Assembly: GCA_030704615.1 (NCBI GenBank)
Contig: CM060733.1
Span: 57,350,001-57,414,000 of the forward strand
Origin: Takakia lepidozioides
Lineage: Eukaryota > Plantae > Bryophyta
Reading direction: 5' to 3'
DNA: 64,000 nucleotides
Positions 15,804-58,952 of this stretch are shown piece by piece; within the stretch, counting starts at the first letter, position 1, and each line of letters starts with the position of its first letter. The translations under genes and the position numbers were made by a program. The notes under the pieces were generated by a model. The model ran no database searches. It was not told the origin of the DNA and worked only from the letters and a program-made list of their open reading frames with translations.

Positions 15804-16457
15804 ATGGAACAGCGCTGGCAAGAATTCCTTCACGATCCTTCACAATGGTGGGACAATCGCGTTGGCAAGGTGCGGCTTTCTTCATGTATGATATGAAGGA
15901 GTTTGTCGGTTCTGCAAAAGTGCCGCTTACTGTCGGTATGATAGCTTGTTCTCCCCAAGCAGGCCATGAGATTGCGTTGCCCACGGGTTTTCCTGGTGTT
16001 TACAAGCTACTTGGGAGGGTCGGCTTGGCCTTAGGAGGCTGTGTTAAAAACTATAGCTGCCCAGCTGCACCCCGGTGGTTTCCACAGACCAATCCAAGAT
16101 CACCGGACTACAGACATTAAGCAGGGAGCTGAAGAGGTCTTTTGGATTGGGGGTTGGTTTGATCCTCCTTGGGTGAAAGACAAGCTAGCTGCTGCCATGA
16201 CACAAGTTCAACCACAATGTGGTGAGGGCACCTTCGTCTTCAACACTTTTGGTCGTATCATTACTCCCTGCATTTTCACCTTGGTTTCGGTAAGTTAGCT
16301 AGTCAGATGGACGTTTGGTCATTCCGAGTGTTCTCAACGTGTTACTGCCAATGGGATTGCAGGCAAATACCCGAAAACGGGAAATAGGGACAAGGAGGAG
16401 ATTTGGGACGAATATTTTTCAAACACCAGTCAATGGTGGGACAATAGCGGCAGAAAG
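15804..16457 (+). CDS. 5' exons of the PPR-DYW gene encoding OSB-type PDF motif halves
   Basis: Exon A 15804-15869 MEQRWQEFLHDPSQWWDNRVGK|GT. Exon B 16088(or 16125)-16221 TNPRSPDYRH../GAEEVFWIGGWFDPPWV..QC|GT. Exon C 16363-16457 GKYPKTGNRDKEEIWDEYFSNTSQWWDNSGRK|GT. Splice phases of B(16125)-C-D are compatible. Confidence 0.75.
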
Positions 16458-16742
16458 GTAAACCCACGTTATTTGAAAGCAGGAGCAAGAGCAGAAAGAA
16501 AGATGCATCGAAAACTTTCTTGGAAACTCTCTGTCTCCGTCACTCTGCTTGTTTCTGTTCCTATGCTTTTATTTTGTTCCAGTCTGTCAATGGATGAAGA
16601 CCTTAAGGATGACCTGAGGGCCTACATACCCTTGGCACTCAACTAAAATTCAAAATCCAGGGCAAAGAGTCTACCTTTGAACAATAAACAGATGCAGAGA
16701 GGAAAGGGAGATTGTCAATGCCTGATGTGCGGGCAGCCTTAT

Positions 16743-17100
16743 TGAGCCCTCACAAACGAAGTGTCTGTTCGTTTTTCTGCCCTAGCTGAGTGTGGGTTTA
16801 TGGCCACAAGGCTATCTCTATCACTTTCTTTCGAGGCTGAGCCTAAAGCCCTGGCCCTGTTGGGGGTCTAACTTTCTAGGCTGATGACACACAGCAGATT
16901 GATGCTTGTGTGAAGGGCTTTCTAGAGGATATCTGGAAATCCCGAACTAATTGTTTATATCAAGGTAAGTCATACTACTGCAGTGAGCCCCTCACAAAGG
17001 TAGTGCCTATTCCCTATGTTTCCGTCCGAACTGGGTGCAGAGTTTATGGCCACAAGGCTACGGCAAACAAAGTCTTATGAGTACATTCTATCACTTTCTT
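16743..17100 (+). mobile_element. 5'-truncated LINE 3' end in a PPR gene intron, with a short partial duplicate at ~16743-16830
   Basis: Similar to 47805-48200 (CAGCAGATTGATGCTTGTGTGAAG...GGCCACAAGGCTACGGCAAACAA.GTCTTATGAGTACATT). Confidence 0.7.
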
Positions 17101-17399
17101 TCCATGGGCCCTTTTCCTAGTATGACTCGCAGTGCAACCATATCCATCTCTGCTGCCAGCTAGAGCGCTAGTGGAGCAATGTGCAATTAACCTCTCTCCT
17201 TATACTATGTAGAGGTATGCCCACACACTTAAGGATTTATACTGGACCTCTCTCACATGCACACCCTACACCTCTGGTTGTGAGGTATTGCTTGGTAAAA
17301 TTCTTAGTTTGTCAATGTAAGCTCTAAGTGGCCAGGGAAGGATCTCTTCATATGTAGGGAGGGATAGCTTAAGGAGGCAGGGAGGGAGTGGGGTGGCAG

Positions 17400-19511
17400 A
17401 TCAATCCCCAAGGACCAGATTTCAGGCACAAGAACACGAAGGAGGCACTGTGGATTGATAACTACCTGACATCTGCATCAGTAGATGGTCAACTTAGAGC
17501 AGCAGTACAGTTATGTGAACCAGGCACCTCCTCCATGATCACTGCTTTTGAAAGAGGACCAAGACAGGGAGCTCATAACAATTCTTCTCGGGTTTGTGGG
17601 GATGTGAAGACACTCTGTAAGGCAGGTCAACTGAGAGAAGCGTTGCACATTTTGCAGCAAGCCTGCATTTCCGCAGACTCCAGTACATATGTCTGTCTCT
17701 TGCAGCAGTGCATCAAGATGAACTGCGTCACAGAGGGAAAGCAGGTGCATGCCCACATTATCCAGAGTGGATTCAAACCAAATGTTTTTCTACTCAATAC
17801 CCTCGTGAATATGTATGCCAAGTGCGGGAGCTTGGTGGATGCACGCTTAGTGTTTGACAAAATGCCTGAACGAGATATGTTTACATGGAATATGATGATG
17901 GCAGGATATGCCCAGCATGGGTGTGGTAGGGAAGCCTTTGAGATCTATGAGCATATGAGAAGGGAAGGAGTAGTGCCCACCAATGTCACATTCACTTGCA
18001 TTCTCAAGGCATGTGCAAGCATGGCAGCCCTGGAAAGGGGCATAGAGGTCCATGCTGACATCATCAAAGCTGGAATTAAGCCAGATATTATTCTGAAAAA
18101 CTCTCTTGTTGACATGTATGCCAAATGTGGTAGTTTAAAAGATGCTCGTCAAGTGTTCGACAACATGGATCAGCGAGACGTAATCTCATGGAATGCAATG
18201 ATCGCAGGATATGCTCAGCATAGGGGCGGTAGGGAGGCCCTCAAAGTAGTTGAACAAATGAAACAGGAAGGCTTCAAACCAAACATAGTTTCATGGAGTG
18301 CAATTATTGCAGGATATGCTCAGCATGGATGTGGTAGAGAGGCTTTGGACACCTACGAGCAAATGATTCAGGAAGGAGTGACACCTAACCAGGTCACATT
18401 TGTTTCTGTTCTCAATGCATGTGCCAGCCTGGCAGCCCTGGAAAAGGGCAAAGAGGTCCACGCTGACATCAGGAAAGCCCAATTCCAGCCAAATTTCATT
18501 CTCAAGACTGCCATTGTCAACATGCATGCCAAATGTGGGAATATGAAGGATGCACGTCAAGTCTTCGACAGTATGGCTCAGCGAGATGTGGTCTCATGGA
18601 GTGTGATGATTGCAGGATATGCTCAGCATGGGAGTGGTAGGGAGGCCCTGCAATTATTTGAGCAAATGCAAAAGGAAGGCTTAAAGCCAGACAGTAGCAC
18701 CTTCACATGTGTTCTCTCTGCCTGTAGCCATGTAGGTCTAGTGGATGAAGGCTGTCACTACTTTAATTCCATGACTCAAGATCATGGCCTCGCTCCCACA
18801 ATGGAGCATTTTGGCTGCATGGTTGACCTCCTTGGTCGTGCAGGACAATTGGACAAGGCAGAGAACTTCATTAACAAAATGTCAATTGAACCAACTGCTG
18901 CAGTGTGGCGGACCTTGGTTGGAGCCTGCAGAGTTCATGGCAATGTGGAGGTGGCAGAACATGCAGTGAAATGCCTTCTCAAATTGGATCCAGAGGAGGC
19001 TGGAAGCTATGTGCTACTATCGAACATCTATGCAGCAGCTGGCAGGTGGGAGGATGCTGCAAAGGTGAGACAAATGATGGAGGACAGAGGAGTCAGGAAG
19101 GAGGCAGGACACAGCTGCATTGAGGTGGACAACCAAGTGCATACATTCATTGTAGACGACAAATTGCATCCACAAATTGAGGAGATCCACGCTGAGCTAA
19201 ATAAATTGTCTTGGCAGATGAAGGAGGTCGGGTACATGCCTGACACTCGCTTTGTTTTGCATGATGTGGAGGAGGAGCAAAAGGAATCTTCTCTTTGCTA
19301 CCACAGTGAGAAGCTGGCCATTGCTTTTGGGCTGATTAGAACGCCCCCTGGGACGTCTCTCCGTATCATCAAGAACCTTCGGGTGTGCGGTGACTGCCAC
19401 ACTGCCACCAAATTCATCTCAAAGATTGCCGGGCGAGCAATTGTTGTACGTGATGCCAATCGCTTTCACCACTTCCAAGATGGGCTTTGTTCCTGTGGGG
19501 ATTACTGGTGA
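17400..19511 (+). CDS. PLS-class PPR protein with E1/E2 and intact DYW cytidine deaminase domain (C-to-U RNA editing factor), main exon
   Basis: AG acceptor at 17398-17399, then INPQGPDFRHKNTKEALWIDN. Repeats L-S-P-L-S-P-P-L-S-P2-L2-S2-E1-E2 are followed by [14 protein letters not shown] and C-terminal CSCGDYW*. Confidence 0.96.
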   Translation: MNPQGPDFRHKNTKEALWIDNYLTSASVDGQLRAAVQLCEPGTSSMITAFERGPRQGAHNNSSRVCGDVKTLCKAGQLREALHILQQACISADSSTYVCLLQQCIKMNCVTEGKQVHAHIIQSGFKPNVFLLNTLVNMYAKCGSLVDARLVFDKMPERDMFTWNMMMAGYAQHGCGREAFEIYEHMRREGVVPTNVTFTCILKACASMAALERGIEVHADIIKAGIKPDIILKNSLVDMYAKCGSLKDARQVFDNMDQRDVISWNAMIAGYAQHRGGREALKVVEQMKQEGFKPNIVSWSAIIAGYAQHGCGREALDTYEQMIQEGVTPNQVTFVSVLNACASLAALEKGKEVHADIRKAQFQPNFILKTAIVNMHAKCGNMKDARQVFDSMAQRDVVSWSVMIAGYAQHGSGREALQLFEQMQKEGLKPDSSTFTCVLSACSHVGLVDEGCHYFNSMTQDHGLAPTMEHFGCMVDLLGRAGQLDKAENFINKMSIEPTAAVWRTLVGACRVHGNVEVAEHAVKCLLKLDPEEAGSYVLLSNIYAAAGRWEDAAKVRQMMEDRGVRKEAGHSCIEVDNQVHTFIVDDKLHPQIEEIHAELNKLSWQMKEVGYMPDTRFVLHDVEEEQKESSLCYHSEKLAIAFGLIRTPPGTSLRIIKNLRVCGDCHTATKFISKIAGRAIVVRDANRFHHFQDGLCSCGDYW

Positions 19512-20770: not shown

Positions 20771-23319
20771 TTAATATTGATGTAGGGGTGAATGTTCCAT
20801 GTTTTCCAGTCTGGCTTCCTGCATTCTCCAAAACAAGCGATTGTACTAGGAGTATCCTCTAGGCTGCAACAGGCATCTTAGTCCTAGCAATGATACTACT
20901 GGTTCATTGTGTCTTATTTCTCACTTATTGATCGAGAGTTATCCAGCACGGCTTACCGTATGAACACGCCTTATGGCAACCTGCGGGCAATCAAGGGTTT
21001 TAATTTTTCCCCCTTCAATAACCTATAATAAAATTAAAACCAGGGCATCCCCCTGTTCTCCCAAAAAATAAAATTCTAGCGACGACCAAAGGTCGGAAGC
21101 TAGTTTAGCGTAGAGCAGGAATAGGGTGTCATAGTGCCACGTCATCGTTGCCACGTTTCGTCGCCACGTCATCGTCGTCGTCAATTTCTTTGGAACCTGC
21201 CCGAAATGCCCGAAAAGCAGCGTGGGGAAGAGATGCCCCCGCGTGCTCGAGCTTCTGAAAGAGGATCGAGAGAGGGAGTCCACAATGCCTCTTCTAGTAC
21301 TTCTATGCATGTGAAGATGCTTTGTGAGGTAGGCAAACTGACAGAGGCTCTACAAACTTTAAACCAAGGAGGCATTTAGACACCTATGTCTGTCTCTTGC
21401 TTAAGTGCATCAAGATGAAAGGTCTGGAAGCTGGAAAGCAGGTGCACACGCACATTATCCAAAGTGGATTCACGCCAAATGTTTTTCTACTCAACACCCT
21501 TGTCAACATGTACGTTAAGGGCGGGAGCATCATGGATGCTCACCAAGCATTGAACAGAATGCCTCAACGATCTTGATCACGTGGAATATAATGTTGGTAG
21601 AATTTACCAAGCATGGGTGTGGTAGGAATGCTTTTGAGACCTATGAGCAGATTATGCGCAAAGGGGTGAAGCCCAACCACATCAGATTTGTTTGTGTTTG
21701 CAATGTGTGTGCAAGCCTGGGAGCTCTGGAAAAGGGGAAAGAGGTCCATGGTGACATCGCCAAAGCTGGAATTATACCATATGTCATTCATATGTCACTC
21801 ACGATGGTGGGACAACCGCAATCGCAAGGTGTGGCTTTTTCTTAATGTATGATGTGAAGAAGTTTGTCCATCCTGCACATGTGGGCTCTTGGCTCCTGTT
21901 AGTACCATGATTTGATATTCTTCTTGATTATGTTACAAGGTTCTTGGGAGAGTCAGCTCGGTCTTAGCAGGCTGTGTTTCAATCTATGTCTGCTCAGCTG
22001 CACCGTGTTGGTTCTCACAGACCAATCAGACATCACTTGACACAAGCAGCACACACAAGGGGTCCTTTTGGGTTGATGGTCAAATCCTCCATGGATCATG
22101 CTACAAGGTCAAGGACAATGTGGTGAGGGCACTTCTTCTTCGACCTATTTCAGCCTGTTTTGCCCTCTCATCAGACTCGGCCCTGAGATGCATATTGAAT
22201 TTTCAAGGACTCAATGTGGTGAGGGCACCTTCTTCGACCTATTTCAGCCTGTTTTGCCCTCTCATCAGACTAGGCCCTGAGATGCATATTGAATTCTGCA
22301 AGTTAGGTTGTTGGGTAGATGGTCAACTGGAAACAGCAGCGACAGTGACACAAATGATAGAACAAGGCACTGCTAATGTTCAGGCACCTTCTTCAACACA
22401 TTTCACCCTGTTTTTCCCTCTTGTCAGAGTCGGCCCTAAATTTCCATGTTGAATTCTGCAAGTTAGCTGGTTGAATGAATCTGGTTTGGAGTGACTTTGA
22501 CATGATACTGCCAATGTGATAACAGGAAAGTATCTGAAAACAGGTAACAGAGAGAAGGTGTGGAATGAATACTTTGTTGACCCCAGTCAATGGTGGGACA
22601 ACCGAGGCAAAAAGTTGAATCCTTGTTAGATCAGCAGACGCAATTCAGCATAGGAACTAGTGTGATTGGGTGTTTCCTAGGTTGTCATTGTCAGCTGCTG
22701 GCAGCAAGGGAAAAGATGAATGCATGATTTGTGCAGAGGCATGGATTTTGGCATTTGATGACGAAATGCCGAAATGAGACGTGGTCTCTTGGACTGCAAT
22801 AATTGCAGGATGTATTGAGCAAGGGCATGGTGAAGAGGCATTTGAACTCTTTGGGCAAATGCCACAAGAAGTTGTAGAGCCCGACAAGGTCACTCTCATT
22901 TGCATCCTCAAAAGATGTGCCAGCCCAGCAGCTCTAGGGCAGGGCAAGGGGCTTCATGCCCACATTGTCAGAGCTGGATTTGAATCAGATGTTTATGTAG
23001 GAACTAGCCTTGTCCATATGTATGCCAAGTGTGGGAGTTTGGTGGATGCGCGAAAGATATTTGAAAAATGTCTAGGCGAGATGTGATTTCATGGAATGCT
23101 CAAGGAAGAGGCATTTCAGCTCTTTCGGCAAATGCAAGTAGAAGGCGTGATGGTCCATGCCCATATCATTGAAGTTGGCTTTGAGTCAGATGTCCGTGTG
23201 GGAAACACCCTTCTCAGCATGTATGTCAAGTGTGGAAGTCTGGTGGATGCATGCCGAGTCTTTAACAATATGCCTGAACAAGATGTGGTTTCATGGAATG
23301 CAATGATTGTAGGATACAT

Positions 23320-23773
23320 TCAGCCCTCATCAGCCTCTTCACCCCGCATACCGGTGGGTGACCCCGCAGCTTGGCCCACCCATCGGTGGGGGAAATTGAA
23401 AAGACGTCGGCCACCAACAAAGGCGAACGACACCAGGATGGCCAACGTTCTTGCAATGCCCTGCATAGTGCAAGGTTGCAGGGATGTTCCTCACCCGAGG
23501 ATGGGGCGCATATTTCAGTTGTCAACAGCCGGGTCTGCTACACGCAATGTCGTGTATGCAATCACAGTTTCTCAGTACCCAACTTGCAACTGTGAGGACT
23601 TCATTGTTATGGAATCGAAGAATGCAGCATACGTCCCCTACAAACAGCTTTATTACATTTTTCTGAAGCGCATGAGTTGCATATCCGCAATGGACGTCTT
23701 TATCCATGCTCCAACACTAAGCTTCAACGAGCTGCACAAGGCCCTACGACAAGATACAGGTCAGACTGCTTGA
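23320..23773 (+). other. SWIM zinc-finger-like fragment embedded among PPR fragments
   Basis: YAITVSQYPTCNCEDF...YVPYKQLYYIF fits the SWIM pattern CxCx(n)CxH with the last two ligands decayed. Confidence 0.6.
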
Positions 23774-26700
23774 CATTCCACATTCGGGAAGGAGAAAGTG
23801 GCAATTATATTACATTCATCTTCTTGGACCCTTATTTTTTGTGAGGAATCATACAGTTGGTGGTGCCGCACCGCCATGGCTTCAGGTGCATTTCGGTGCC
23901 GCAATACATGAGAATGTGGTTTTTGGCCGTGAATGGCATGGGCATGCTTTTTTTATTTTGGTTATGTCTATTAATGGATCCGAGGAAAGCATACGTGAGG
24001 CTGGATATAGATCACACCACAAACAGGGGAGATCTTTCCAATCTTGAAACATTGTGGAAGGGGATGAAAGAGAGGATATGCTTTTGACACATTTTGTGTT
24101 GCGTACTCTGGATCAGGTGCAGAAAATGGTAGTCTGCATATGTGGAGTCCTTGCATGGACCTTGTCTGTGATGGTCAAAAAGAATACAAGGCCTATGCAG
24201 GTTGTAGCCTGAAGACAAGGCTTTTGGATCACCAATTTTTACTCAGGCGAGGAGAAGTTGTGGAATGAATACTTTTCTTACCCCTGTTAATGGTGGAACA
24301 ATCGAGGCAAAAATGTAAATGTCTGTTGGATAACAGAGAGTAGCATATGCAATTGAGCATAGGAACTAGTATGATAAGTTGAGTTGGGTGTTTCGTAGAA
24401 CAAATCTAGGCTGTCATTGTCGGCTGCTAGCAGCAACGTAAGGATGTATGCATGAGTGGTCGAGCGAAGGGAGTCTTTGACAATGCACGGCTGAATGAAA
24501 TGTGGTGTCGTGGAATGCGATGATCGCAGGATATGCCCAGCATGGTTGTCAAGGTCCTGCAACTATTTGACGGAATGCGAAAGAACGGCTTGAAGCCGGA
24601 CAATATCACCTTTATATGTGTTCTCTCTGCATGCAGCCACACTGGCCTACTGAAATCCAGATGTTGTGGTGTGGAAGGCCTTGCTTGGTGCCTGAAGAAT
24701 CCATGGCAATGTGGAGATGGCGCGACTTATGTGTTGCTATCAAACATCTATGCTGCAGCTGGCAGGTGGGATGATACTGCAAAAGTGAGAAGAATGATCA
24801 CGGTCACAGGGGTTAGAAAAGAGCCAGGAGCCAGGTCGCTGTTGCATTGAGGTTGGCAACAGGGTGCACACCTTCGTTGTAGATGACAAGTTGCATCCCA
24901 CAATTAAGGAAATCCATGCTGAGCTGAGAAGATTGTCTGGGTGGAATGACTTTGACAAGTAACTGGTAATGTGGCAGCAGAAAAATATCCAAAAACAAAT
25001 AACAGTGTTCAACAATGTGGCTGAATGAACTGTGGTGCCGCGGAACACCATGCTTATGCACAATAGGGGTGTGGGATGGAGGCTTTGGAGACCTATGAGT
25101 AAATGATGGTAGAAGGGGTGAAGCCTGACCACATCACGTCTGTGCGTTTGCAAGCCTGGCAGCCCTAGAAAAGGGCAAAGAGGTGCATGGTTGCATCGCG
25201 AAAGCAGGAATTGTACCAGATGTGATTCTGAACAATACCCTCGTGGACATGTATGCCGAATGTAGGAGGCATTTCAGCAGATTCAGATACGTTTGTCTGT
25301 CTCTTGCTTAAGTGCATCAAGATGAAAGGTCTGGAAGCTGGAAAGCAGGTGCACACTCACATTATCCAAAGTGGATTCACGCCAAATGTTTTTGTCCTCA
25401 ACACCCTTGTCAACATGTCAAACCTGGGAGCTCTGGAAAAGGGGAAAGAGGTCCATGGTGACATCGTCAAAGCTGGAATTGTACCAGATGTCATTCTGAA
25501 CACTGCCCTGGTGGACATGTATGCCAAATGTGGGTGCATTAAGGATGCAAAGGGAGTTTTCAACACTATGGCTGAACGAGATGTGGTGTCATGGAAGACG
25601 ATGCTTGCAGGGTATGCACAACAAGGACGTGGTATGAAGGCTTTGGAGACCTATGATCAAATGATGGGGGAAGGGGTGAAGCCCGACCACATCACATTTG
25701 TGTGCATTTGCGATGCGTGTGCAAGCCGGGCAGCTCTGGAAAAGGGCGAAAGAGGTCCATGGCGACATTGTCAGAGCTGCAGTTGTACCAAGTGTCATTT
25801 TGAACAATACCCTCGTGGACATGTATGAAGGGAGTGTTTGACAGTTTGGCTGAAAGAGATGTGGTGTCGTGGAGTGCGATGAATGCAGGATATACACAGC
25901 AAGGGCGCGGGATGGAGGCTTTGGAGACCTCTGAGCAAATGATGTGCGAAGGGGTGAAGCCCAACCGCATAACGTTTGTTTGCATTGGCAATGTGTGTGC
26001 AAGCTTGGCAGCCCTGGAAAGGTGCAAAGAGGTCCATGGTGACATCGTCAAATCTGGAATTGTACCCGATGTCATTCTGAACACTGCCCTGCTGGACATG
26101 TATGTCAAATGTGAGTGCATCGAGGATGCAAAGGGAGTGTTCGACAGTATGGCTGAATGAGATGTGGTGTCATGGAGTGCGATGATTGCAGGATATGCAC
26201 AGCAAGGATGCGGGATGGAGGCTTTGGAGACCTATGAGCAATTGATGTGCGAAGGGGTGAAGCCCTACCGCAACACATTTGTTTGTGTTTGCAATGCGTG
26301 TGCAAGCCTAGGAGCTCTGGAAAAGGGGAAAGAGGTCCATGGTGACATCGTCAAAGCTGGATTTGTACCAGATGTCATCCTGAACACTGCCCTGGTGGAC
26401 ATGTATGCCAAATGTGGGTGCATGAAGGATGCGAAGGGAGTTTTCAAATGGCTGAACAAGATGTGTCGTGGAACGCGATGAGGCGTGGGATGGAGGCTTT
26501 GGAGACCTATGAACAAATGATGGGGGAAGGGGTGAAGCCCGACCACATCACGTTTGTGTGCATTTGCAATGCGTGTGCAAGCCTGGCAGCCCTGGAAAAG
26601 GGCAAAGAGGTGCATGGTTGCATCGCCAAAGCTGGAACTGTACCAGGTGTGATCCTGAACACTGCCTTGGTGGACATGTATGCCAAATGTGGGAGCATTG

Positions 26701-28431
26701 AGGATGCGGAGGGAGTGTTCAACAATATGGCTGAACGAGATTTGTTGTCATGGAACGTGATGCTTGCAGGATATGCACAGCAAGGCATGGGATGGAGGAC
26801 TTGGAGACCTATGAGCAAATGATGGGGGAAGGGGTGAAGCGCGACCACATCACATTTGTGTGCGTTTGCAGTGCGTGTGCAAGCCTGGCAGCCCTGGAAA
26901 AGGGCAAAGAGGTGCATGGTTGCATCGCCAAAGCTAGAATTGTACAGATGTGATTCTGAACAATACCCTGGTGGACATGTATGCCAAATGTGAGAGCATT
27001 GAGGATGTGGAGGGAATGTTCAACAATATGGCTAAACGAGATTTGGTGTCATGGAACGCCATGCTTGCAGGGTATGCACAGCAGGGGCGCGGGATGGAGG
27101 CCTTGGATCATACCTATGAGCAAATGATGGGGGAAGGGGTGAAATGCAACCACATCACATTTGTGAGCATTTGCAATGCCTATGCAAGCCTGGCAGCCCT
27201 GGAAAATGGCAAAGAGGTCCATGATGGGGGAAGGGGGGAAGCCCGACCACATCACGTTTGTGTGCATTTGTAATGCGTGTGCAAGCCACATTCATTTGTG
27301 TTCTCAATGTTGGTGCCAGCATGGTAGCCCTGGAGAAGGGCAAAGATATCCATGCTGACATTATCAAAGCTGGAATTTCGTCATACAGTAATTGGGAGAC
27401 TGCCCTTGTTAACATGTATGCCAAATATGGGAGTGTAAGGGAGGCCTGTCTAGTGTTCAACAATATGGTGGCAGGATATACCAAGCATGGTTGTGGTAGG
27501 AATGCCTTTGAGACATATGATCAACTGATACAGCAAGGGGTGATGCCCGATCAGGTCACATTTGTTTGCATTCTCAAGGCTTGTGCGAGACTGGCAGCCC
27601 TGGAAAACGGCAAAGAGGTCCATGCTGACATATGAAAGCTGGAGTTGTACCAAATCTGATTTTGAACAATAGCCTTGTTGACATGTATGTGAAATGCGGG
27701 AGCATGAAGGTTGCAAAGAGAGTATTTGACAACATGGCTGTCGTGGAATGCGATGATCACAGGATATGCCCAGTGGGTGTGGGATGGAGGCTTTGGGGAC
27801 CTATGAGCAAAAGATGCGGAATCATTCAACAGAATGCCTCAACGATCTTGATCACGTGGAATATATTGTTGGCAGGATTTACCAAGCATGGGTGGGGTAG
27901 GAATGCTTTTGAGACCTATGAGCAGATTCTGCGCAAAGGGGTGAAGCCCAACCACATCAGATTTGTTTGTGTTTGCAGTGCATGTGCAAGCCTGGCAGCC
28001 CTGGAAAAGGGCAAAGAGGTGCATGGTTGCATCGCCAAAACCGGAATTGTACCAGATGTGATTCTGAACAATACCCTCGTAGACATGTATGCCAAATGTG
28101 GGAGCATCGAGGATGTGGAGGGAGTGTTCAACAATATGGCTGAACGAGATTTGGTGTCATGGAACGCCATGCTTGTAGGATATGCACAGCAGGGGTGCGG
28201 GATGGAGGCCTGGGGGAAGGGTTGAAGCCCGACCACATCACGTTTGTGTGCGTTTGCAATGCGTGTGCAAGCCTGGCAGCCCTGGAAAAGGGCAAAGAGG
28301 TTCACGGTGACATCATCAAAGCTGGAATTGTACCAAATGTCATTCTGGACACTGCCCTGGTTCACTTGTATGTGAAATGTGACTGCAATGAGGATGCAAA
28401 GGGAGTATTTGACAATATGGCCGGATGAAAT

Positions 28432-29283
28432 GTGGTGTCGTGGAATGCGATGATCGCAGGATATGCCCAACATGGTTGTCATAGGGAGGTCCTGCAACTA
28501 TTTGAAAGAATGCAAAAGAAAGGCTTGAAGCCTTATAGTATCACCTTTATATGTGTTCTCTCTGCCTGCAGCCACACTGACCTACTGAATGAAGGAAGAT
28601 GCTACTTCGATTCCCTGAGTGAAGATCATGGTATCAATCCGACAGTAAAGCAATTTGGCTGCATGATGGACCTTCTTGGACGTGTGGGACAACTGGATGA
28701 GGCCGTGGACCTGATTAATAAAATGCCAATCAATCCAGATGTTGTGGTGTGGAAGGCCTTGCTTGGTGCTTGCAGAATCCATGGCAATGTGGAGATGGCT
28801 GAATGTGTGGCAACATCTATCCTCAAGTGGGATGAACAAGATGCCACGACTTATGTGGTGCTATATCAAACATCCATGCTGCAGCTGGCAGGTGGGATGA
28901 TACTGCAAAGGTGAGAATAATGATGAAGGTCAGAGGGGTTAGGAAAGAGCCAGATGACAAGTTGCATCCCAGAATTAAGGAAATCCATGCTGAGCTGAGA
29001 AGATTGTCTGGGCAGATGAAGGAGGCAGGGTATGTGCCTGACACACGCCTTTTATTGCATGATGTGGAGGAAAGGAATTTTCTCTTAGCCAGCACAGTGA
29101 GAAGCTGGCCATTGGTTTTGGGCTGATCAGAACGACTCATCAAGAATCTTCGAGTGTGTGGAGACTGCCACACCTCCACCAAATTTATCTCAAAGATTGT
29201 TGGCCGATCAATTGTTGTATGGGACGCTAACTACTTTCCACCACTTTGAAGATGGGATTTGTTCTTGTGGTGATTACTGGTGA
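28432..29283 (+). pseudogene. P2-L2-S2-E-DYW terminus, frameshifted with PG-box deletion
   Basis: [55 protein letters not shown] and final CSCGDYW* are present in shifting frames. Confidence 0.9.
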
Positions 29284-30169: not shown

Positions 30170-31363
30170 CGAATTGAGGAAATCCATGCTGAGCTAAAGA
30201 CTTGCTGAAGAGATTGTCTTGACAGATGAATGATCAAGCAAATGATGGGGGAAGGGTGTCGCTTTTTCTTAATGTACGATCTGAAGAAGTTTGTCCATCC
30301 TGCAAAGGTGGGCTCTTGGCTCCTGTCAGTACCATGATTTGATATTCTTCCTGATGTTTGCAAGGTTCTTGGGAGAGTCAGCTTGGTCTTAGCAGGCCCT
30401 GTTCAATCTCTACCTGCTCAGATGCACCGTAGTGGTTCTCACACATCAATCCGACATTACCTGACTACAGACACAAACAGCACACACAAGAGGTCATTTT
30501 GGGTTGATGGTCGGTCAAATCCTCCATGGGTCATGACACAAGGTCAAGGACAGTTTGGTGAGGGCACATTTTTCTTCGACCTATTTCAGCCTGTTTTTCC
30601 CTCTCATCAAACTCAGCCCTGAGATGCATTTGTTAGTACCATGATTTGGTGTTCTTCCTGATGTTTACTGCAAGGTTCTTGGGAGAGTCAGCTTGGGTGC
30701 TTCAATCTCTGCCTGCTCAGCTGCACCGTGGTGGTTCTCACAGACCAATCCGACCTGACTACACACACAAGCAGCACACACAAGAGGTCCTTTTGGGTTG
30801 ATGGCCGGTCATATCCTCCATGGATTATGACACAAGGTCAAGGACAATGTGGTGAGGGCACCTTCTTCTTCGACCTATTTCAGCCTGTTTTGCCCTCTCA
30901 TCAGACTCGGTCCTGAGATGCATATTGATCAATTCTGTAAGTTAGCTCGTTGGCTGGATCTGTGGTGGTTTGGAGCGACTTTGACAAGTTACTGCCAATG
31001 TGGCAGCAGGAAAGTATCCAAAAACAGATAACAGAGATGAAGAGAAGCTTTGGAATGAACACTTTTTCGACCCCAGTCAATGGTGGGACAATGGAGACAA
31101 AAAGGTGAATGCTTGTTGGACTACAGAGAGAAGCAGATGCAATTTAGGATTGATAGAACAAGGCACTGCTAATGAAGGCATCTTCTTCAACATATTTCAC
31201 CTTGTTTTTCCATGTTATCAGAATCGTCCCTAAATTATCATGTTGAATTTTGCAAGTTAGCTCGTTGGTGGATCTATGGTGGTTTTGGAGTGATTTTGAC
31301 ATGTTACTGCCAATGTGGCAACACGAAAGTATCAAAAAACAGATAACAAAGACGAGGAGAAGC
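30170..31363 (+). pseudogene. Duplicated PDF-exon/intron fragments of the PPR family
   Basis: Copies of intron 1 plus exon B (PDYRHK..FWVDGRSNPPW) occur twice, then exon C (EEKLWNEHFFDPSQWWDNGDKK|GT at ~31040-31103) and a second exon C cut by the LTR. Confidence 0.85.
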
Positions 31364-33532: not shown

Positions 33533-33696
33533 CGTAGCACGAGAGGCAAAGCAATTCCTGTAAGCCTCAGGAACCGCCGTATACGTTGTCTCTCTCCTCT
33601 AGTGACAATAGGTCCAATGTCAGGCTCCCAATTGCCCTTCGTAACTGCAACCTTAAGTCCAGCAGACTTAGAGGTAGAGGACGTGTCCCGTGGTTG

Positions 33697-35073: not shown

Positions 35074-35112
35074 CCGTCGATCAACATCCCGCTACAAATC
35101 CTTGCTCGTGCC

Positions 35113-37674: not shown

Positions 37675-40600
37675 CAAATGTGGTCAGGCTTCACCCCTTC
37701 CCCCATCATTTGATCATAGGTCTCCAGAGCCTTCATACCACATCCTTGTTGTGCACACCCTGCAAGCATCGTCTTCCATGACACCACATCTCGTTCAGCC
37801 ATAGTGTTGAAAACTCCCTTCGCATCCTTAATGCACCCACATTTGGCATACATGTCCACCAAGGCAGTGTTCAGAATGACATCTGGTCCAATTCCAGCTT
37901 TAACGATGTCACCATGGACCTCTTTCCCATTTTCCAGAGCTCCCAGGCTTGCAAATGCATTGCAAACACAAACAAATGTGATGTGGTTTCGTGGAGGGTG
38001 ATGATTGCAGGATATGCACAGCAAGGGCGCAGGATGGAGGCTTCGGAGACCTATGAGCAAATGATGGGGGAAGGGATGAAGCCCAACCGCATAACGTTTG
38101 TTTGCATTTGCAATGCGTGTGCAAGCCTGGCAGCCCTGGAAAGGGGCAAAGAGGTCCATGGTGACATAGTCGAAGCTGGATTTATACCAGATGTCATCCT
38201 GAACACTGCCCTGCTGGACATGTATGTCAAATGTGAGTGCATCGAGGATGTAAAGAGAGTGTTCGACAGTATGGCTGAACGAGATTTGGTGTCGTGGAGT
38301 GCGATGATTGCAGGATATGCACAATAGGGGCGCGGGATGGAGGCTTTGGAGACCTATGAGCAATGATGGGGGAAGGGATGAAGCCCGACCACATCACGTT
38401 TGTGTGCGTTTGTAGTGCGTGTGCAAGCCTGGCAGCCCTGGAAAAGGGCAAAGAGGTGCATGGTTGCATCGACAAAGCTGGAATTGTACCAGATGTGATT
38501 CTGGACAATACCCTTGTGGACATGTATGCCAAATGTGGGAGCATTGAGGATGCGGAGGGAGTGTTTAACAATATGGCCGAACGAGATTTGGTGTCATGGA
38601 ACGCCATGCTTGCAGGATAGGCACAGCAGGGGCGTGGGATGGAGGACTTGGAGACCTATGAACAAATGATGGGGGAAGAGGTGCATTGAGGATGCAAAGG
38701 TCAGAGGGGTTAATTAGAAAGGAGCCAGGTCGCTGCTGCATTGAGGTTGGCAACAGGGTGCACACCTTTGTTGTAGATGACAAGTTGATCTTCTTGAACG
38801 GCAGTAGGGGTTTCACACGCCGATCGCAGATGGGCAGGAGCTCGCACGATGGTGGGACAACCGCAATCGCAAGGTGTGGCTTTTCTTAATGTACGATGTG
38901 AAGATGTTTGTCCATCCTGCAAATGTGTGCTCTGCAGGATATGCCGAGCATGGGTGTGGGTTGGAGGCTTTGGATATCTATGTGAAAATGATGCAAGAGG
39001 GGGTGAAGCCCGACCAGGTCACTTTCATTTGTGTTCTCAAGGCATGTGTGAGCCTGGCAGCCCTGGAAAGGGCAGAGAGGTCCAGGCTGCCATTGAAAGC
39101 TGGAATCATGCCAACTATCGTTCTGGACACTACTCGTCAGCTTGGTCTTAGCAGGCCGTGTTTCAATTGGTTGAGTGAATCTTTGATAGTTAGGAGTGAC
39201 TTTGACATGATACTGCCAATGTGACGACATGAAAGTATCCGGAAACAGGTAACAGAGACGAGGAGAAGCTGTGGAATTTTTAGTTTTCTGACCCCAGTCA
39301 ATGGTGGGATCACAACTGGGGCAAAAAGGTGAATGCCTGTTGGATTACAGAGAGTAGCAGATGCAATTGACCAACTCCCATCTTTTGGTGAATGGCCAAC
39401 CAACACTGCCCACTATCATAACAAATGAGTAGGAGTATCCCAGTCATGCAGGCTAAGTCCGCCGTTGAGTTGCATCAAATGATTGTATATACTCAGTCAT
39501 GAACCCCATGGCCTCATCAGGTGTGGACACTCAAAACACCCAGCTGTTTGGCAAGCTAGTGCACTGCCCTCATAACCATATGTAGATAATTTACTCGTAA
39601 GATGTTGTTTGTTGTAGACTTGTGGCCATAGACCCCACACCGACTTTGGGCAGAATTAAAGGGAACAGACAGTTCTTTTGTAAGGGGCTCACTCTGGTAG
39701 TGAGGTTCACCATGGTATATACAATTAGCTCTAGAGAGCCCTTCACACTGCATCAACTTGATGTTGGTGACTAGCTACATGGCAATTAGACCACAACACA
39801 ACCACGGCTTCAGGCTCAGCCTGAAAAATTTCAAAGTTGATGAACAGAGGTGCAAGGACAATGTTCTTGATGTTCCTGAAAAGAGTCACTTTCTGGTGAG
39901 AATATCCCGGATAGTGTAACAGAAAATGAATACTGTCCTCAGGCGCCTGCACATCGGGCAATTACAAGTTCATTTTCCTATCTGCATTTGAATATTGTTG
40001 AAAGGCACCCTTGTCAACATGTATGTTAAGTGCGGGAGCATCATGGATGCTCACCAAGTGTCAACAAAATGCCTCAACGATCTTTGATCACGTGATAATG
40101 TTGGCAGGATTTACCAAGCATGGGTGTGGTAGGAATGCCACGTTTGTGTGCATTTTCGATGCGTGTACAAGCCTGGCAGCTCTGGAAAAGGGCGGAGAGG
40201 TCCATGGCGACATTGTTAGAGCTGCAATTGTACCAAGTGTCACTCTGAACAATACCCTCGTGGACATGTATGAAGGGAGTGTTCGACAGTATGGCTGAAC
40301 GAGATGTGGTGTCTTGGCTTTACTTCTTGTTACTATCATTGTACTTACTTCTGGTACAACACATGGCCTAATGCTTGCAGGGTATGCACAACAGGGGTGC
40401 GGGATGGAGGCTTTGGAGACCTATGAGCAAATGATGGGGGAAGAGGTGAAGCTTGACCACATCACGTTTGTGTGCATTTGCGATGCGTGTGCAAGCCTGG
40501 TAGCCCTGGAAAAGGTCAAAGAGGTGCATGCTTGCATCACCAAAGCTGGAATTGTACCAGATGTGATTCTGAACAATACCCTCGTGGACATGTATGCCAA

Positions 40601-41175
40601 TTGTGGGAGCGTTGAGGATGCGGAGGGAGTGTTCAACACTATGGCTGAACAAGATGTGGTGTTGTGGAACGGGATGCTTGCAAGATGTGCACAGCAGGGG
40701 CGCGGGATGGAGGCTTTGGAGACCTATGAGCAAATGATGGGGGAAGGGGTGAAGCCTGACCACATAACGTTTGTGTGCATTTGCAGTGCGTGTGCAAGCC
40801 TGGCAGCCCTGGAAAAGGGCATAGATGTGCATAGTTGCATCGTCAAAGCTGGAAATGTACCAGATGTGATTCTGAACAATACCCTTGCGGACATGTATGC
40901 CAAATGTGGAGGGAGTGTTCAACAATATGGCTGAACAAGATTTGGTGTCGAACGCGATGCTTGCAGGATATGCACAGCGGGGCGCGGGATGGACGCCTTG
41001 GAGACCTATGAGCAAATGATGGGGGAAGGGGTGAAGCGCAACAACATCACGTATTTCAGCTTGTTTTGCCCTCTCATCAGACTCGGCCCTGACAAGTTAC
41101 TGCTGATGTGGCAGCAGGAAAGTATCCAAAAACAGCTAACAGAGATGAGGAGAAGCTTTGGAATGAATACTTTTT
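37675..41175 (+). pseudogene. Mosaic of PPR/PG-box/PDF fragments; 37675-~37985 is inverted
   Basis: PPR-type ORFs 37914..38327, 38363..38620 and 40314..40934; KEPGRCCIEVGNRVHTF at ~38720; WWDNRNRK|GT at ~38850; exon C copies at ~39240 and ~41120. Confidence 0.9.
39590..39960 (-). mobile_element. 5'-truncated LINE 3' end
   Basis: PEDSIHFLLHYPGYSHQK..AEPEAVVVL; same family as 47805-48200. Confidence 0.7.
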
Positions 41176-44100
41176 TAATCTTGAAAACTTCTGGTTTAGA
41201 ATAGACACAATTTGGACCAGGAGAATTTTTATCCAAGACGTTACAACCACTATAGATAGACAAGTTGAGCATCACCAACATCATTGAGCGATGGCTGTAA
41301 ATCTGTCTGCCATCTGAGCTCAACCTGGTTGTTTACAGCTTCATTTAAATCTTGGTTTTTTCTGTAATGTGCTGTAGGATACAACTATAGCTCACCAATG
41401 CTTTTGGATGTCTGACAAGAAGCAGACACTCTACTAATATGGGAGGACTTTATAAGAAACAGCTCCAGTTACTTAATTTCTGAGGTACAGCCTGTGGCAT
41501 GTTAACGGTAGATCTGAACGCAAGGAAGGTGAATGCCAGAAACCTTAAGGAAGTGTGGGATGGTGGACCGGGAGGTTTTGAGCAGATCATTATTAAACAT
41601 GAACTCGCCCTCAACATCGTAACTGAGCCGGGATGCATTTAACAAGTCTTGCTTAATCTTGCCAGGAGTTTTTGACCAGAAATTGCTTAAATCACTGCAG
41701 AAAATACGGATTAAATTAAAACCGAAGTTTGGTAAAGATAATTATCTTTTATCAAGATGATCATGACAATAAAATTAAATGATGAGAGACAAATGATGAT
41801 CTAGGAAAAAGATATAAACAACCGACTTTTGATCCAAACGAAACATACGTTAAACGATGGGCAAAATACAGAGAAAGGGGTTCAACTCCCCTTCACTTCT
41901 TGGGCATAGATAGGTAGCTGCATCAAACACTGAAATAGGGAGACGTGACATGGTAGCTTTGGCAACACTCCTCCATTCTTTCTTGCGCAAAACAATGAAA
42001 CATGGCATGTGTGTATATAACATCATGTGGATGACCCCGCCCTTTTTGTGAAAATTGATGCTAGTTCTCAGAAGTTGTTGCTAGTAGTGCGGAGCAACGC
42101 GAAGCCCTACTGAATTAAAATAAAATAAAATAATGATCCATGTTCATTGTTTTGAATGCGATGTGAGTCGAACCCTCGACCACCCTAGGGAGGATGGATG
42201 TTCTGTATCATCCGAAAGATGGAATAGATGGATGAAAGGAGAGGGGTATGTGGACGAAGGGAAGGTACGTGGCAGAGCTGCAGCCGTCACAGCGCCCGCT
42301 TCGACTGGAGACTGGATACGCGACCCGGTCGACTACCGGCTGGCAGGTGAGGGAAACAGGCTGGCGCCCTGATGCAGGGCCGGGCTACCGGTTGTAGCCG
42401 GCGCGACATACCCCTGCCACCAGTCCAGACTCCGTAGAAAGGTATTTTTTGGGCCCGCGTGATTTATCCCATATCGATAGCCGCCAAAGTGCCCCGCCTT
42501 TTGGACTATATAATACGCGGCATGGCCTGCCCTCCGTTGGATGGCACGCTGATGGAGCCCACCCTATCGGCGACCTTGTCGATCTGTGAAGCTGGCGATG
42601 GCGGTAAAGGAAGAGTCTGGCTGCTGGCGAGACATGCGAGGCGATTGCATCTGGAGATGGAGCGAGTGATTAGCAGGGCTGGATCGTGGCAGCGGCGTTG
42701 TGGTGGTCGGTGGGGTGTGGGAGATGGGGAGATCTGAGATGAATCTCAGGTTGTTGAGGAGCTTATGCTGTCGACGTTGTTTTATAGGGCACTGTTGATG
42801 CTCTTCTACTTTCTAACGTGGCCGTGTCGGGGCAATGTCGTTCAATTCAATCCATGCAGGAGCTTGCTTACAAGCTATTGTCGGGGTCACCGACAAATGG
42901 GACCAATTGGCAATGCCTGCCCTGCTGGGCGGGTCGGGCAACAAAATAGCAATGATGCAGATGGCCAGATCTAGAGTGAGCTTGATTCGACAAAGTTAAC
43001 CAGTGGTCAGGTGAAATTGAGTACTTCTGATCTATCACAAGACCGTGGGCTTTTTAGTTGCATCAGTTGCACCTACTGTACATACGGCATTAATGCGGAA
43101 TCACGTGGGCTCACACTGAGCTGATCCAAATGGCCCGATGATGCTTTGCAAGTGTCTGTCTTCATCGCGCCAGCAGTGAGTAGACCATTGTGTTTTCGAA
43201 GACCCGAGAATCAGACCGTCGTGGACCTTTTAACGTCACTATCTTGTCAGTGTCAAATCACAATCCATGGAGCACCCACCACATCCAAAGAACAAATCGA
43301 TGCCTCTAAGGTTTCCTAAATCCCATGATCAGGTTTCAAGCATCCAATGTCCAGTTAGTAATTCAGTTACATATCTGTAGTCAGTTAGAAAGAAAACGAT
43401 TAGTCCACTGCATTCAAGTATGACATGTACACCTTACCAGATCAATCGCTGGATTTAACTTCTTACATCGTACCTCTGGAAACTGCAATAATTTGCATAT
43501 TCTGTAAGTATGTTCAGGATCAACTTTAAAACTGATCCAGGCACTATGTAGCTCAATGGGGAGCTCAATGGGGAGGGATTGTATGAAGTTAAGACTTTCA
43601 ACGACCCAAAAGGCCCACGCGCAACATGACGCCTGTACTTTTCACGGGTAGCCAATCCCTGGAAATGGTCGGCCTGTGGGCCCAAGTTGGTTGTGCGGGG
43701 GGTCGTATCTCTGCATGCACCCTCTCTCTCCCCGGAGACAATATAAGACTTGTAGCTCCCTTATTCTCAGCATCTCAAGTGGCGAGCTACGCTCGAGCTA
43801 CAGACCGCTGTAGCTTTTTCGGACAATCTTTTGACTTGCGGCTCTATCCCTTGAAGGCTCAGGTTCTTCACTCCACCGACGTGTCTATCTCCTGGAGCCT
43901 GGCACCTGATCGCATCATCACTCACCCGCGTGTCGTCCCCGTATTATCATTTTGTTCGACCCATGTGTGATTTGTGGACCGTTTAATTGAGTCATCCAGT
44001 GTTCTATTATACTGCTCAGCAGCATTTAGTTGGCCTTGTCCGAATCTTATGATCTAGAGAGTCAGGGATCACCCACTGTGCTCTCTCTTGAGAGCTGCTG

Positions 44101-55869: not shown

Positions 55870-58830
55870 CAGCTTGCAATAGCGACACAATTGATAAAAT
55901 CAGGCATTGCTGATGAAGGCACCTTCTTCAACACATTTCACCCTATTTTCCCCTCCTATCAGAATCGGCCCTAAATTTTCATGTTGAATTATGCAAGTTA
56001 GCTGGTTGAGTGAATCTAGGATAGTTTGGAAAGACTTTGACATGATACTGCCAATGTGACAACAGGAAAGTATCCAGAAACAGGTAACAAAGACGAGGAG
56101 AAGTTGTGGAATGAATATTTTTCTGACCCCAGACAATGGTGGGACAACCGAGGCAAAAAGGTGAATGCCTATCAGATTACCAGATGTCATTCTGAACACT
56201 GCCCCTGCCCTGGTGGACATGTAGCCAAATGTGGGTGCATCGAGGATAAGGGATCAGTGTTCAACTCTATGGTTGAACGAGATGTGGTGTTGTGGAGTGC
56301 GATGCTTGCAGGGTATGCACAGCAAGGGTGCGGGATGGAGGCTCCAACCTTTGAGCAAATGATGGGGGAAGGGGTGAAGGCCGCCAACATAACGTTTGTG
56401 TAAGTTTGCAGTGGGTATAGCAGCCCTGGAAAAAGGCAAAGAGATCCCTGGTGACTTCATCAAATCTGCAATTGTATCAAAATTTGTTATCCTGAACATT
56501 GCTTTGGTGGCCATGTATGCCAAATGTGGGAGCATTGAGGATGCCAAGGGAGTGTTCAACACTATGGCTGAATGAGATGTGGAGTCGTGGAACGCGATGC
56601 TTGCAGGGTGTGCAGAGCAGGAGCGCGAGATGGGGCTTTGGAGACCTGAAAGCAGATGATGGGGGAAGGAGTGAAGCTCGACCACATCATGTTTCTGTGC
56701 GTTTGCAGTGCGTGTGCAAGCCTGCAGCCCTGGAAAAGGGCAAAGAGGTGCATGGTTGCATCACCAAAGCTGGAAAAGGGGAAGATCTGATTATTAACAA
56801 TACCCTTGTGGACATGTATGCCACTGTGGGAGCATTGATGATGCGGAGGGAATGTTCAACACTATGGCTGAACAAGGTGGTATCGTGGAACACGATTCAT
56901 CCAAGAGGTCAATTTTAAACACAAGATTACTTTTGATTCCCTACGGATCAATAGCTACAAGAAAGCTGCGTGGGTAGATGGTCAACTGGAAATAGCAGCG
57001 GCAGCAGTGCATTTGATAGAACAAGGTGCTGCTAATGAAGGTACCTTCTTCAACACATTTCAGCCCGTTTTTCCCTGTTATCAGAGTTTTTCCCTATTTT
57101 TTCCTGAATGAGCATGGATAGAGTGTGGGTCCAGATTTATCCAAGAGGGCTGGACTTCAAGCTCCAGATTACCTTGATTCCATGTGGGGGTCAGTAGCTA
57201 TAAGAAACCTGCATGGGTAGATGGTCAACTAAAGGTAGTAGCTGCAGCGGCACAGTTGATAAAATCAGGCACCTCAACCATGACCACAGCTTCTGAAAGA
57301 GGATCAAGAGAGGGAGTCCACAATGCCTCTTCTGGCACTTCTGGGCATGTGAAGATACTTTAAGCGACAGCCTGACAGAGGCTCTACAGACTCTAAACCA
57401 AGGAGGCATTTCAGCAGATTCAAATATGTGTCTGTCTCTTGCTTAAGTGCATCAAGATGGACGGTCTCGAAGCTGGAAAGCAGGTGCACACTCACATTAT
57501 CCAAAGTGGATTCACGCCAAATGTTTTTCTACTCAACACCCTTGTCAACCTGTATGTTAAGTGCCGGAACATCAGGGATGCTCACCAAGTGTTCAACAGA
57601 ATGCCTCAATGATCTTTGATAACGTGGAATATTATGTTGAAAGGATTTACCAAGCATAGGTGTGGTAGGAATGTTTTGGAGACATATGAGCAAATGATGT
57701 GCGAAGCGGTTGAAGCCCAACCACATCACATTTGTTTGTGTTTGCAATGCGTGTGAAAGCCTGGGAGCAAGCTGGAATTGTACCAGATGTCATCTTGAAC
57801 ACTGCCCTTGTGGACCTGTTTGCCAAATGTGGGTGCGTTAAGGATGTGAGGGGAGTTTTCAACACTTTGGCTGAACGAGATGTGGTGTCGTGGAACGTGA
57901 TGCTTGCAGGGTATGCACAACAGGGGCACGGGATGGAGGCTTTGGAGACCTATGAGCAAATGATGGGGGAAGGGATGAAGCCTAACCACATCACAAGGCA
58001 TTTCACCAGATTCAGATATGTATGTCTGTCTCTTGCTTAAGTGCATCAAGATGGAAGGTCTGGAACAGTTTTGGACTGGTATATAGGTGAAGGACTGGTA
58101 CATAATACTGGTATATGCACTGGTATTAGATACCAGACCAGTCTGGTATCATTTGGGAGAATACTTGGTCAGATACTAGACCAGGCTGGTATCAGTTCTT
58201 TCATACCAGCCACAATACCCGTACTCCCCCATCGTCTTCCTCATTTACTCTGGTATGTATACTAAATTAATTTATGTGTACATATGCCTATATATTTGTA
58301 CTTATGTATATTTACTTCTTATGTATATTTTATTTGTTTTCACTTGATACTTGCCACTTGACAAATTTGTAACTCAAGATGGCTTTGGAATGATACCAGA
58401 GTTGATATCTCATACCAGCTGGTATTGTGGTCATGATACTCATATTCATACCAGTATCTGGAAAAAAATACATCCACCATTATAGAGACCAGACTGGTAT
58501 GAAAGTTTTGTGATACGCCTCGTACCAGGACCAGTCTGGTATGTAAAAAACTTGATACCAGTCCAACACTGGTCTGGAAGTTGGAAAACAGGTGCATACT
58601 CACATCATCCAAAGTGGATTCACGTCAAATGTTTTTCTTCTCAACACCCTTGTCAACATGTATGTTATGTGCGGGAGCATCATTGATGCTCACCAAGTGT
58701 TCAACAGAATGCCTCAACGATCTTTGATCACGTGGAATATAATGTTAGCAGGATGCAATGCGTGTGCAAGCCTGGGAGCTTTGGAAAAGGGGAAAGAGGT
58801 CCATGGTGACATTGTCAAAGCTGGAATTGC
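55870..58830 (+). pseudogene. Third cluster of scrambled PDF-PPR fragments
   Basis: EEKLWNEYFSDPRQWWDNRGKK|GT at ~56095-56160; PDF second halves near 56900 and 57135; PPR N-terminus at 57290ff similar to 21250ff; broken PLS repeats. Confidence 0.88.
58066..58571. mobile_element. hAT-type MITE inserted in a PPR fragment
   Basis: TIR CAGT(T/G)TTGGACTGGTAT; 8-bp TSD GTCTGGAA at 58058-58065 and 58572-58579; many internal CTGGTAT/ATACCAG motifs. The PPR frame resumes across it. Confidence 0.9.
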
Positions 58831-58952
58831 GACGTTCAAATCAATATCGGTCATCAATACCTTGCCCGCGTGTAGTTCGTCATGATGTCGAGCACACAGA
58901 GGGATTTGCTTCTTCCCATTGAGTGCCGACAACCACGCTACCTGCTCAAGTG

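Follow-up and report, generated by a model that had tools for sequence, protein, structure and literature searches.

PPR-DYW proteins are RNA editing factors in which an array of pentatricopeptide repeats (PPRs) reads a specific organellar RNA and a C-terminal DYW zinc deaminase converts cytidine to uridine. PPR arrays bind RNA in parallel, with the N-terminus of the protein toward the 5′ end of the RNA, and PPR genes usually read as single-exon open reading frames (ORFs). OSB proteins carry another element, the PDF motif, which in AtOSB1 is reported to be sufficient for binding single-stranded DNA (ssDNA); OSB1 and OSB2 reportedly prefer ssDNA over double-stranded DNA (dsDNA) or RNA (PMC6963530, PMC4166229), and AtOSB2 is described as a tetramer (PMC6963530). 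Here we describe a gene in which both elements occur, located in a 64-kb window of Takakia lepidozioides (CM060733.1; the window is the whole stretch of DNA analysed, and all coordinates are window positions). We put at roughly 75% the probability that it is a transcribed nuclear PPR-DYW gene with one intact PDF module of about 55 amino acids and a decayed upstream module, that it belongs to an old PDF-PPR family, and that PDF acts in it as a single-strand clamp. An earlier note, made by reading the sequence, had proposed a PPR-DYW deaminase fused to OSB-type PDF motifs. The parts of the gene are as follows.

15804..15869, plus strand: exon A1, N-terminal half of PDF motif A, MEQRWQEFLHDPSQWWDNRVGK; begins with ATG.
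15870..16087, plus strand: intron A, GT..AG, 218 nt; splits motif A at the same motif position as the intron of motif B.
16088..16221, plus strand: exon A2, C-terminal half of motif A with a 1-nt frameshift; also holds ATG 16197.
16222..16362, plus strand: intron, GT..AG, 141 nt, phase 1; its removal fits the length of transcript contig X1 record 3 (see below).
16363..16457, plus strand: exon B, 95 nt; N-terminal half of the intact PDF motif B, (G)KYPKTGNRDKEEIWDEYFSNTSQWWDNSGRK.
16458..17399, plus strand: intron of motif B, GT..AG, 942 nt; cuts the motif after a conserved Lys.
17400..17501, plus strand: start of exon C, C-terminal half of PDF motif B, INPQGPDFRHKNTKEALWIDNYL.
17400..19511, plus strand: exon C, PDF remainder, linker, about 12 PLS-type PPR motifs, E1/E2 (E, E+), DYW, stop codon.
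About 19230-19508, plus strand: DYW deaminase domain within exon C.

The ORF at 17388-19511 (+) runs without interruption. Pfam matches in this ORF comprise PF01535 (PPR) in 10 stretches (E 6e-72) and PF13041 in 8, forming a PLS-type repeat array that spans about 440 amino acids, together with PF20431 (E_motif, E 1.6e-21), PF20430 (Eplus, E 1.1e-5) and PF14432 (DYW_deaminase, E 1.7e-45), the last spanning its whole profile (positions 1-93 of 93). Signatures of zinc binding and catalysis are legible as HSEKLA (HxE), CGDCH (CxxC) and the C-terminal CSCGDYW. The best full-length homologues are PPR-DYW proteins of 45-55% identity from Diphasiastrum, Ginkgo, Cryptomeria and mosses. The gene product is a PLS-class PPR-DYW protein with E, E+ and an intact DYW deaminase domain, as the note had read it, and its count of 12 PLS repeats was roughly right. 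The PG box at the start of the DYW domain departs from the family: it reads AGHSCIEV, where homologues nearly always have PG.SWIE; among about 60 compared, AG occurs in one and a residue other than W in a few.

Ahead of this ORF, two short stretches of coding sequence complete a PDF motif. Exon B ends in EEIWDEYFSNTSQWWDNSGRK, followed by a gt donor; the acceptor ag lies at 17398-17399 and is followed by ATCAATCCC, which continues as INPQGPDFRHKNTKEALWID in the frame of the PPR ORF. Exon B and the first 100 nt or so of the PPR exon (from 17400) thus each encode one half of the PDF motif, and the halves are joined in frame. Upstream, ATG 16197 opens MTQVQPQC, and the phase-1 donor g/gt at 16221/16222 fits the acceptor at 16362/16363. 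The 25 nt from 16197 to 16221 and the 95 nt from 16363 to 16457 make 40 codons, so that exon C begins in phase 0. The longest spliced ORF extends from ATG 16197 to 19511 and codes for 743 amino acids with one intact PDF module. Exons were searched singly, and the frame of the joined spliced protein was checked by arithmetic. The splice from 16363-16457 to 17400 in frame with PPR-DYW, which the earlier note had put forward, is borne out by the GT-AG sites, by the 40-codon arithmetic and by the 583-nt contig described below.

The upstream motif A has a different fate. ATG 15804 opens MEQRWQEFLHDPSQWWDNRVGK, directly followed by gt, and after an ag the motif resumes at 16088 as TNPRSPDYRH. Its second half is off frame: a TAA lies at 16118-16120, the expected continuation KQGAEEVFWIGGWFDPPWVKDKL sits in the next frame, and the profile matches at 16085-16117 and 16125-16211, which cover the second half, fall in different frames. 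A single extra base broke this motif and, being frameshifted, it cannot belong to the long ORF. The note had listed a second upstream motif with an intron at the same position; both are there, but the dots in its transcription hid the break. Two AUGs precede ATG 16197, namely 15752 (out of frame) and 15804. An alternative acceptor at 16121 or 16124, which would keep ATG 15804 in frame and skip the PDF core, is unsupported, the RNA contigs including 16090-16121.

Transcript evidence came from two small public runs of the same organism, X1 and X2, labelled "RNA?", whose contigs were matched to the window. Neither the intergenic bins 15000-15313 nor the intron bin 17198-17354 had any depth, whereas exons were covered, and the runs therefore behave as RNA. 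X1 record 3 (583 nt) contains 16090-16220 at record positions 453-583 with zero differences and 17398-17755 at record positions 1-358, leaving 94 nt between them. The predicted pieces 16090-16221 (132 nt), 16363-16457 (95 nt) and 17400-17755 (356 nt) sum to 583 nt, which is the length of the record, and the overhangs of 2 nt and 1 nt are accounted for by identical bases at the splice sites. Both introns (141 nt and 942 nt) thus appear to have been spliced out in this contig. Its one traceable mismatch, T>A at 17724 (depth 12.8), sits 32 nt before the contig ends, as expected for a k-mer tip that paralogues have in common; five others have no listed positions. At the 3′ end of the gene, X1 record 7 matches 19487-19700 with zero differences.

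The same data bear on motif A. X2 record 8 covers 16084-16220 with zero differences and, since neither it nor X1 record 3 shows a difference or gap over 16118, the frameshift is also present in the RNA. X1 record 2 runs from 15731 to 16114 without break or mismatch, so that intron A seems to be retained in RNA of the window copy. A paralogue contig joins 15860 to 16086 with AATCGCA between them and reads WWDNRNRK/TNP, which indicates that the homologous intron A is spliced in other copies.

Three further observations concern the 942-nt intron. It holds a high-copy repeat at 16760-17200 (+), with thousands of diverged contigs at 16884-17197 in both runs; similar segments at about 16790-16835 and 17035-17100 repeat within it; and a peptide akin to the intron repeat (..EAEPKA.ALLG..) occurs at 47526-48014, near 47.9 kb. 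Upstream of the gene, a neighbour transcribed in the opposite direction has its first exon at 15395-15599 on the minus strand, and X1 record 1 (1840 nt) exits the window sequence there, at a minus-strand GT donor near 15394. This restricts the PPR gene to a 5′ end within about 15600-15800 and leaves about 200 nt as a promoter region shared by the two genes.

The identity of the motif had to be established by profile comparison. Pfam holds no model for PDF, and the first 60 residues encoded by exon C gave no match in a word search, half a motif having too few exact words in common with its relatives. We aligned 17 PPR-linked PDF motifs into a profile (A1) and searched 1.84 billion representative proteins, which returned 1161 proteins at E<=1e-3 and 516 at E<=1e-10. 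Many of these are proteins of 330-530 amino acids with one to several motifs near the C-terminus, and the number of PDF copies per protein ranges from 1 to 13. They include "protein OSB1, mitochondrial-like [Populus nigra]" (P0171, E 6e-30), in which residues 74-167 form an SSB-like OB fold and two PDF motifs come after it. Against the six-frame translation of the window, A1 matched 15807-15869 (36.5 bits, profile positions 1-21), 16125-16211 (26.3 bits, positions 33-60), 16395-16472 (31.7 bits, positions 1-26) and 17403-17501 (29.3 bits, positions 23-55), with no comparable match on the minus strand of the window. A second profile, built from 70 motifs all taken from non-PPR proteins of at least 300 amino acids, scored 29.9, 15.3, 24.3 and 29.4 bits on the same four pieces. 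The PPR-derived profile thus finds OSB1, and the profile from non-PPR proteins of OSB length recognises the exons in the window, so that on sequence homology this is the OSB PDF motif. The SSB-like OB fold (PF00436), present in OSB-type matches such as P0149 (E 4e-13) and P0171, was found in no ORF of the locus; the gene is therefore not an OSB, although it shares the PDF module with OSBs.

An AlphaFold2 model from 126 aligned motifs is compact (pLDDT 90) and consists of a helix, three short strands and a helix. Foldseek against the PDB gave only a non-significant WW domain (E 7), VIA-align returned Z values of 2.8 or less and no solved relative, BFVD gave nothing below E 0.8, and a feature search of the ESM Atlas for the module was blank. 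Two hypothetical clusters from tailed phages (Uroviricota) in the ESM Atlas match the fold of the PDF module over 58 residues (model m08e909f2cfe1, from A2; TM 0.74 and 0.66); their proteins are 199 and 187 amino acids long and the clusters hold 54 and 122 members. Such phage matches could point to an origin of the module that is older or broader.

The architecture extends beyond the window. A complete W..FF..P..WWDNR..K..P.PDFKHK...LW motif stands ahead of the PPR array in 23 of the best 120 PPR homologues and, conversely, a PPR array is also present in 12 of the best 150 PDF matches. As the earlier note had suspected of other seed-free plant proteomes, similar fusions occur in Diphasiastrum complanatum, Sphagnum species, Ceratodon purpureus and Adiantum capillus-veneris.

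Diphasiastrum complanatum: for example KAJ7558666.1 (P0193) and O6H91_15G000200 (P0029).
Sphagnum: KAH8950713.1 (P0211) and CAM6033764.1 (P0208).
Ceratodon purpureus: M758_7G001800 (P0093).
Adiantum capillus-veneris: GOP47_0023879 (P0147).

Public proteomes label these proteins "hypothetical" or plain "pentatricopeptide repeat". A 4.7-kb Logan contig with an open ORF of 1371 amino acids, in which three PDF motifs accompany a PPR array, has the look of a spliced transcript. When the ESM Atlas was searched by fold with the PDF model, the clusters returned at TM 0.84-0.92 were three of PPR/DYW type, with 127, 57 and 63 members, and one of the SSB family.

The position of the intron is shared as well. 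An intron splits PDF after the conserved Lys (profile position ~21) at 15869/16088 and 16457/17400 of the window, in the paralogous exons and in Ceratodon, where locus L001 reads ...WWDNTITK/RNYRAPDFKHK. The motif of poplar OSB1 has no intron, both of its PDF motifs lying in one exon. In a quick tree of 126 rows (one motif per protein, further motifs of multi-motif proteins being left out), 11 of 12 PPR-linked motifs fell into one group of 29 rows with an SH-aLRT of 83, at the weak resolution that few columns allow; the remainder of that group comprised only short fragments and zero OSB-length proteins. Taken together, the same architecture, the intron position shared with Ceratodon and the grouping in the tree point to one old fusion common to mosses, lycophytes and ferns. 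None of the Ginkgo, Cryptomeria and Pinus proteins among the listed PPR homologues carried a PDF motif, which is a sample and no test of absence. When a characterised orthologue of the Ceratodon fusion was sought in Physcomitrium, only two Ceratodon proteins came back, and Funaria PPR77 was rejected as its orthologue at 42% identity. A literature search turned up no paper that connects the PDF motif to PPR proteins, subscription-only papers (the original OSB paper, large PPR surveys) lying outside its coverage. The family of PDF-PPR fusions is thus unnamed in public proteomes and without description in the searchable literature.

The results above show how the gene is built and spliced, that its module is homologous to the OSB PDF motif and how the family is distributed; the role of the module is inferred. 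Given parallel binding of RNA by the PPR array, an N-terminal PDF module would sit 5′ of the recognised element. In the reading that we favour, it would work in cis, clamping single-stranded nucleic acid without regard to sequence, which would raise the affinity or on-rate for the RNA target or, in another version, hold the editing factor near nascent transcripts. By analogy, such a clamp would resemble in its job the separate helper proteins of seed-plant editing factors.

Several points weigh against this picture. OSB1 and OSB2 are reported to prefer ssDNA over RNA, so that an RNA clamp is not the obvious default (PMC4166229). Moss editing factors such as PPR56 work in E. coli with their N-termini removed (PMC10482289), from which an N-terminal module would be dispensable for catalysis as such, PPR56 not being among the proteins screened for PDF. 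The window copy has upstream AUGs (15752 and 15804), a frameshifted first module and an odd PG box (AGHSCIEV), and its translation and activity are uncertain. Reading of the sequence revealed no organelle-targeting presequence upstream of ATG 16197 or ATG 15804. Finally, the junction 16457/17400, for which the note had asked for junction reads, stands as far as the length of X1 record 3 fits the exons exactly; its middle piece of 94-95 nt is unlisted, and the junctions follow from exact length arithmetic without a printed alignment.

Some of these points could also mean that the window copy, though transcribed, is decaying toward an expressed pseudogene: its RNA would be spliced but its protein made poorly, absent or inactive, and the architecture of the family would be real all the same. 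We hold this to be a minority possibility, if a serious one. The frameshift in motif A, with TAA 16118 present alike in the RNA contigs, the seeming retention of intron A in X1 record 2 and the two AUGs ahead of ATG 16197 would all be expected of such a gene, as would the P>A and W>C changes at nearly invariant positions of the PG box, the stops in every other PPR copy of the window, and the lack of a visible presequence where the neighbouring exon at 15395-15599 (-) leaves about 200 nt upstream. However, the 2.2-kb frame from 16197 to 19511 is free of stops through both splices while the neighbouring copies are riddled with them, and the gene keeps HxE, CxxC and the DYW end. Some annotated homologues deviate in the PG box too, and the annotated P0015, P0029, P0147 and P0211 likewise start directly with the PDF module.

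A second alternative concerns the ligand. PDF could tether the editing factor to ssDNA in organellar nucleoids, at transcription bubbles, R-loops or replication intermediates, permitting co-transcriptional editing or bringing DYW within reach of ssDNA; the earlier note had thought along these lines, naming nucleoids, R-loops and action on ssDNA. The reported sufficiency of the AtOSB1 PDF for ssDNA binding and the preference of OSB1/2 for ssDNA over dsDNA or RNA (PMC6963530, PMC4166229) speak for it, the window module being clearly homologous to the OSB PDF. Yet the PPR-linked motifs group apart in the tree and their specificity may have diverged, the searchable papers contain no report of DNA deamination by DYW domains, and the window copy shows no targeting signal; we consider this alternative improbable. 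It would be a similarly long shot that seed-free plants possess a large class of editing factors with built-in ssDNA affinity, as a cis counterpart of the helper proteins of seed plants.

Still less probable, in our estimate, is a role of the PDF module in protein-protein contacts, such as oligomerisation or recruitment to OSB-coated complexes, instead of nucleic-acid binding. The reported tetrameric state of AtOSB2 (PMC6963530), the compact, Trp-rich character of a mini-domain without solved relative and the 1 to 13 PDF copies per protein would suit it, but ssDNA binding is the sole reported activity of the motif (PMC6963530), and nothing here indicates a partner. That the motif pieces match by chance, or are exons belonging to another gene upstream, as an ORF-only view with its pieces in different frames about 1 kb apart would suggest, is refuted by the spliced contig that links both halves to the PPR exon, by matches of the halves to complementary profile positions at 24-32 bits each, by GT-AG sites that preserve the frame, and by the same architecture and intron position in other plants, Ceratodon among them.

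The window holds further relics of the same kind, and all other PPR copies in it carry stops.

21382..29280, plus strand: decayed paralogue(s), with PDF exon relics at 21784, 22552 and 24252, PPR fragments with stops or frameshifts, and a second DYW end at about 29263.
30442..31110, plus strand: PDF relics of another copy, A2-type halves (30442, 30745) and a B-type N-half (31042), then a retrotransposon insertion.
37677..41282, both strands: PPR fragments with stops, plus weak PDF relics at 38844, 39284 and 41150.
56098..58876, plus strand: decayed copy, with a B-type N-half at 56098-56166 (34.8 bits), a weak C-half at 56911-56991 and PPR fragments with stops.

Exons paralogous to exon B lie at 22552, 31042 and 56098. 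At 30442-30538 and 30745-30832 (+) an A2-type half is duplicated (NPTLPDYRHKQHTQE and THKRSFWVDGRSNPPWV), frameshifted elsewhere than at the position corresponding to 16118. Judged from these relics, the upstream PDF module seems to be decaying independently in several copies, B-type N-halves being well conserved. A Ty3/Gypsy-type retrotransposon piece at 32405-36342 (-) lies within this array of dead PPR copies; its integrase (PF17921, PF00665) adjoins an ORF that matches the C-5 cytosine DNA methylase domain (PF00145, E 7e-13). Part of a second methylase-like sequence follows immediately downstream in inverted orientation, at 36644-37651 (+). Two long ORFs at 4060-6496 (-), of 308 and 391 amino acids, are exon-like for a large armadillo/HEAT-like repeat gene (weak Arm_4 match, E 1.4e-4) and are unrelated to the PDF-PPR gene.

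PPR-DYW factors are usually described, cloned and engineered as a PPR array with E motifs and DYW, their N-termini being taken as transit peptides; that of PPR56, for example, was cut away in a heterologous assay (PMC10482289). A conserved nucleic-acid-binding module ahead of many moss, lycophyte and fern factors would be a functional part that has escaped notice. How these plants handle very many editing sites could find an explanation in it, and PDF would be a small portable module for designer editors. The fusion becomes visible only after splicing, as the earlier note had pointed out and the RNA-like contig supports, and ORF-only annotation of PPR genes overlooks short upstream exons of this kind. 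With this locus the PDF-PPR family gains an expressed member, one of whose two modules is intact and the other decayed.

Compared with the systems described so far, the gene shares with OSB proteins the PDF module of about 50-55 amino acids, W..FF..P..WWDNR..K.NP..PDFKHK..GEALW...P.WV. In OSB proteins, the module is C-terminal and follows an SSB-like OB fold, without PPR or DYW, whereas here it is N-terminal to PPR-DYW and no OB fold is present; it is split by an intron in the window gene and in Ceratodon, in contrast to poplar OSB1 with both motifs in one exon. Canonical PPR-DYW proteins, such as PPR56, PPR65 and PPR77 of Physcomitrium, have the same PLS array and E1/E2 as the gene, and their deaminase likewise shows HxE, CxxC and a terminal DYW. 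It differs from them by the additional N-terminal PDF module, contributed by small upstream exons, and by its deviating PG box (AG..C); Funaria PPR77 (P0086) showed no PDF motif in our motif screen. Further counterparts are the unnamed PDF-PPR(-DYW) proteins, with which it shares the order of modules (one to three PDF motifs, the PPR array and often a terminal DYW) at an overall identity of only about 50%. Unlike in these relatives, its upstream motif is frameshifted, and it lacks the stretch of about 140 amino acids that many Diphasiastrum models have ahead of the PDF motif. P0015 and P0029 of Diphasiastrum start like exon A1, with MEQ.WQEF (MEQLWQEFF...), and P0045 and P0071 carry two tandem PDF motifs of the same two types as the window gene.

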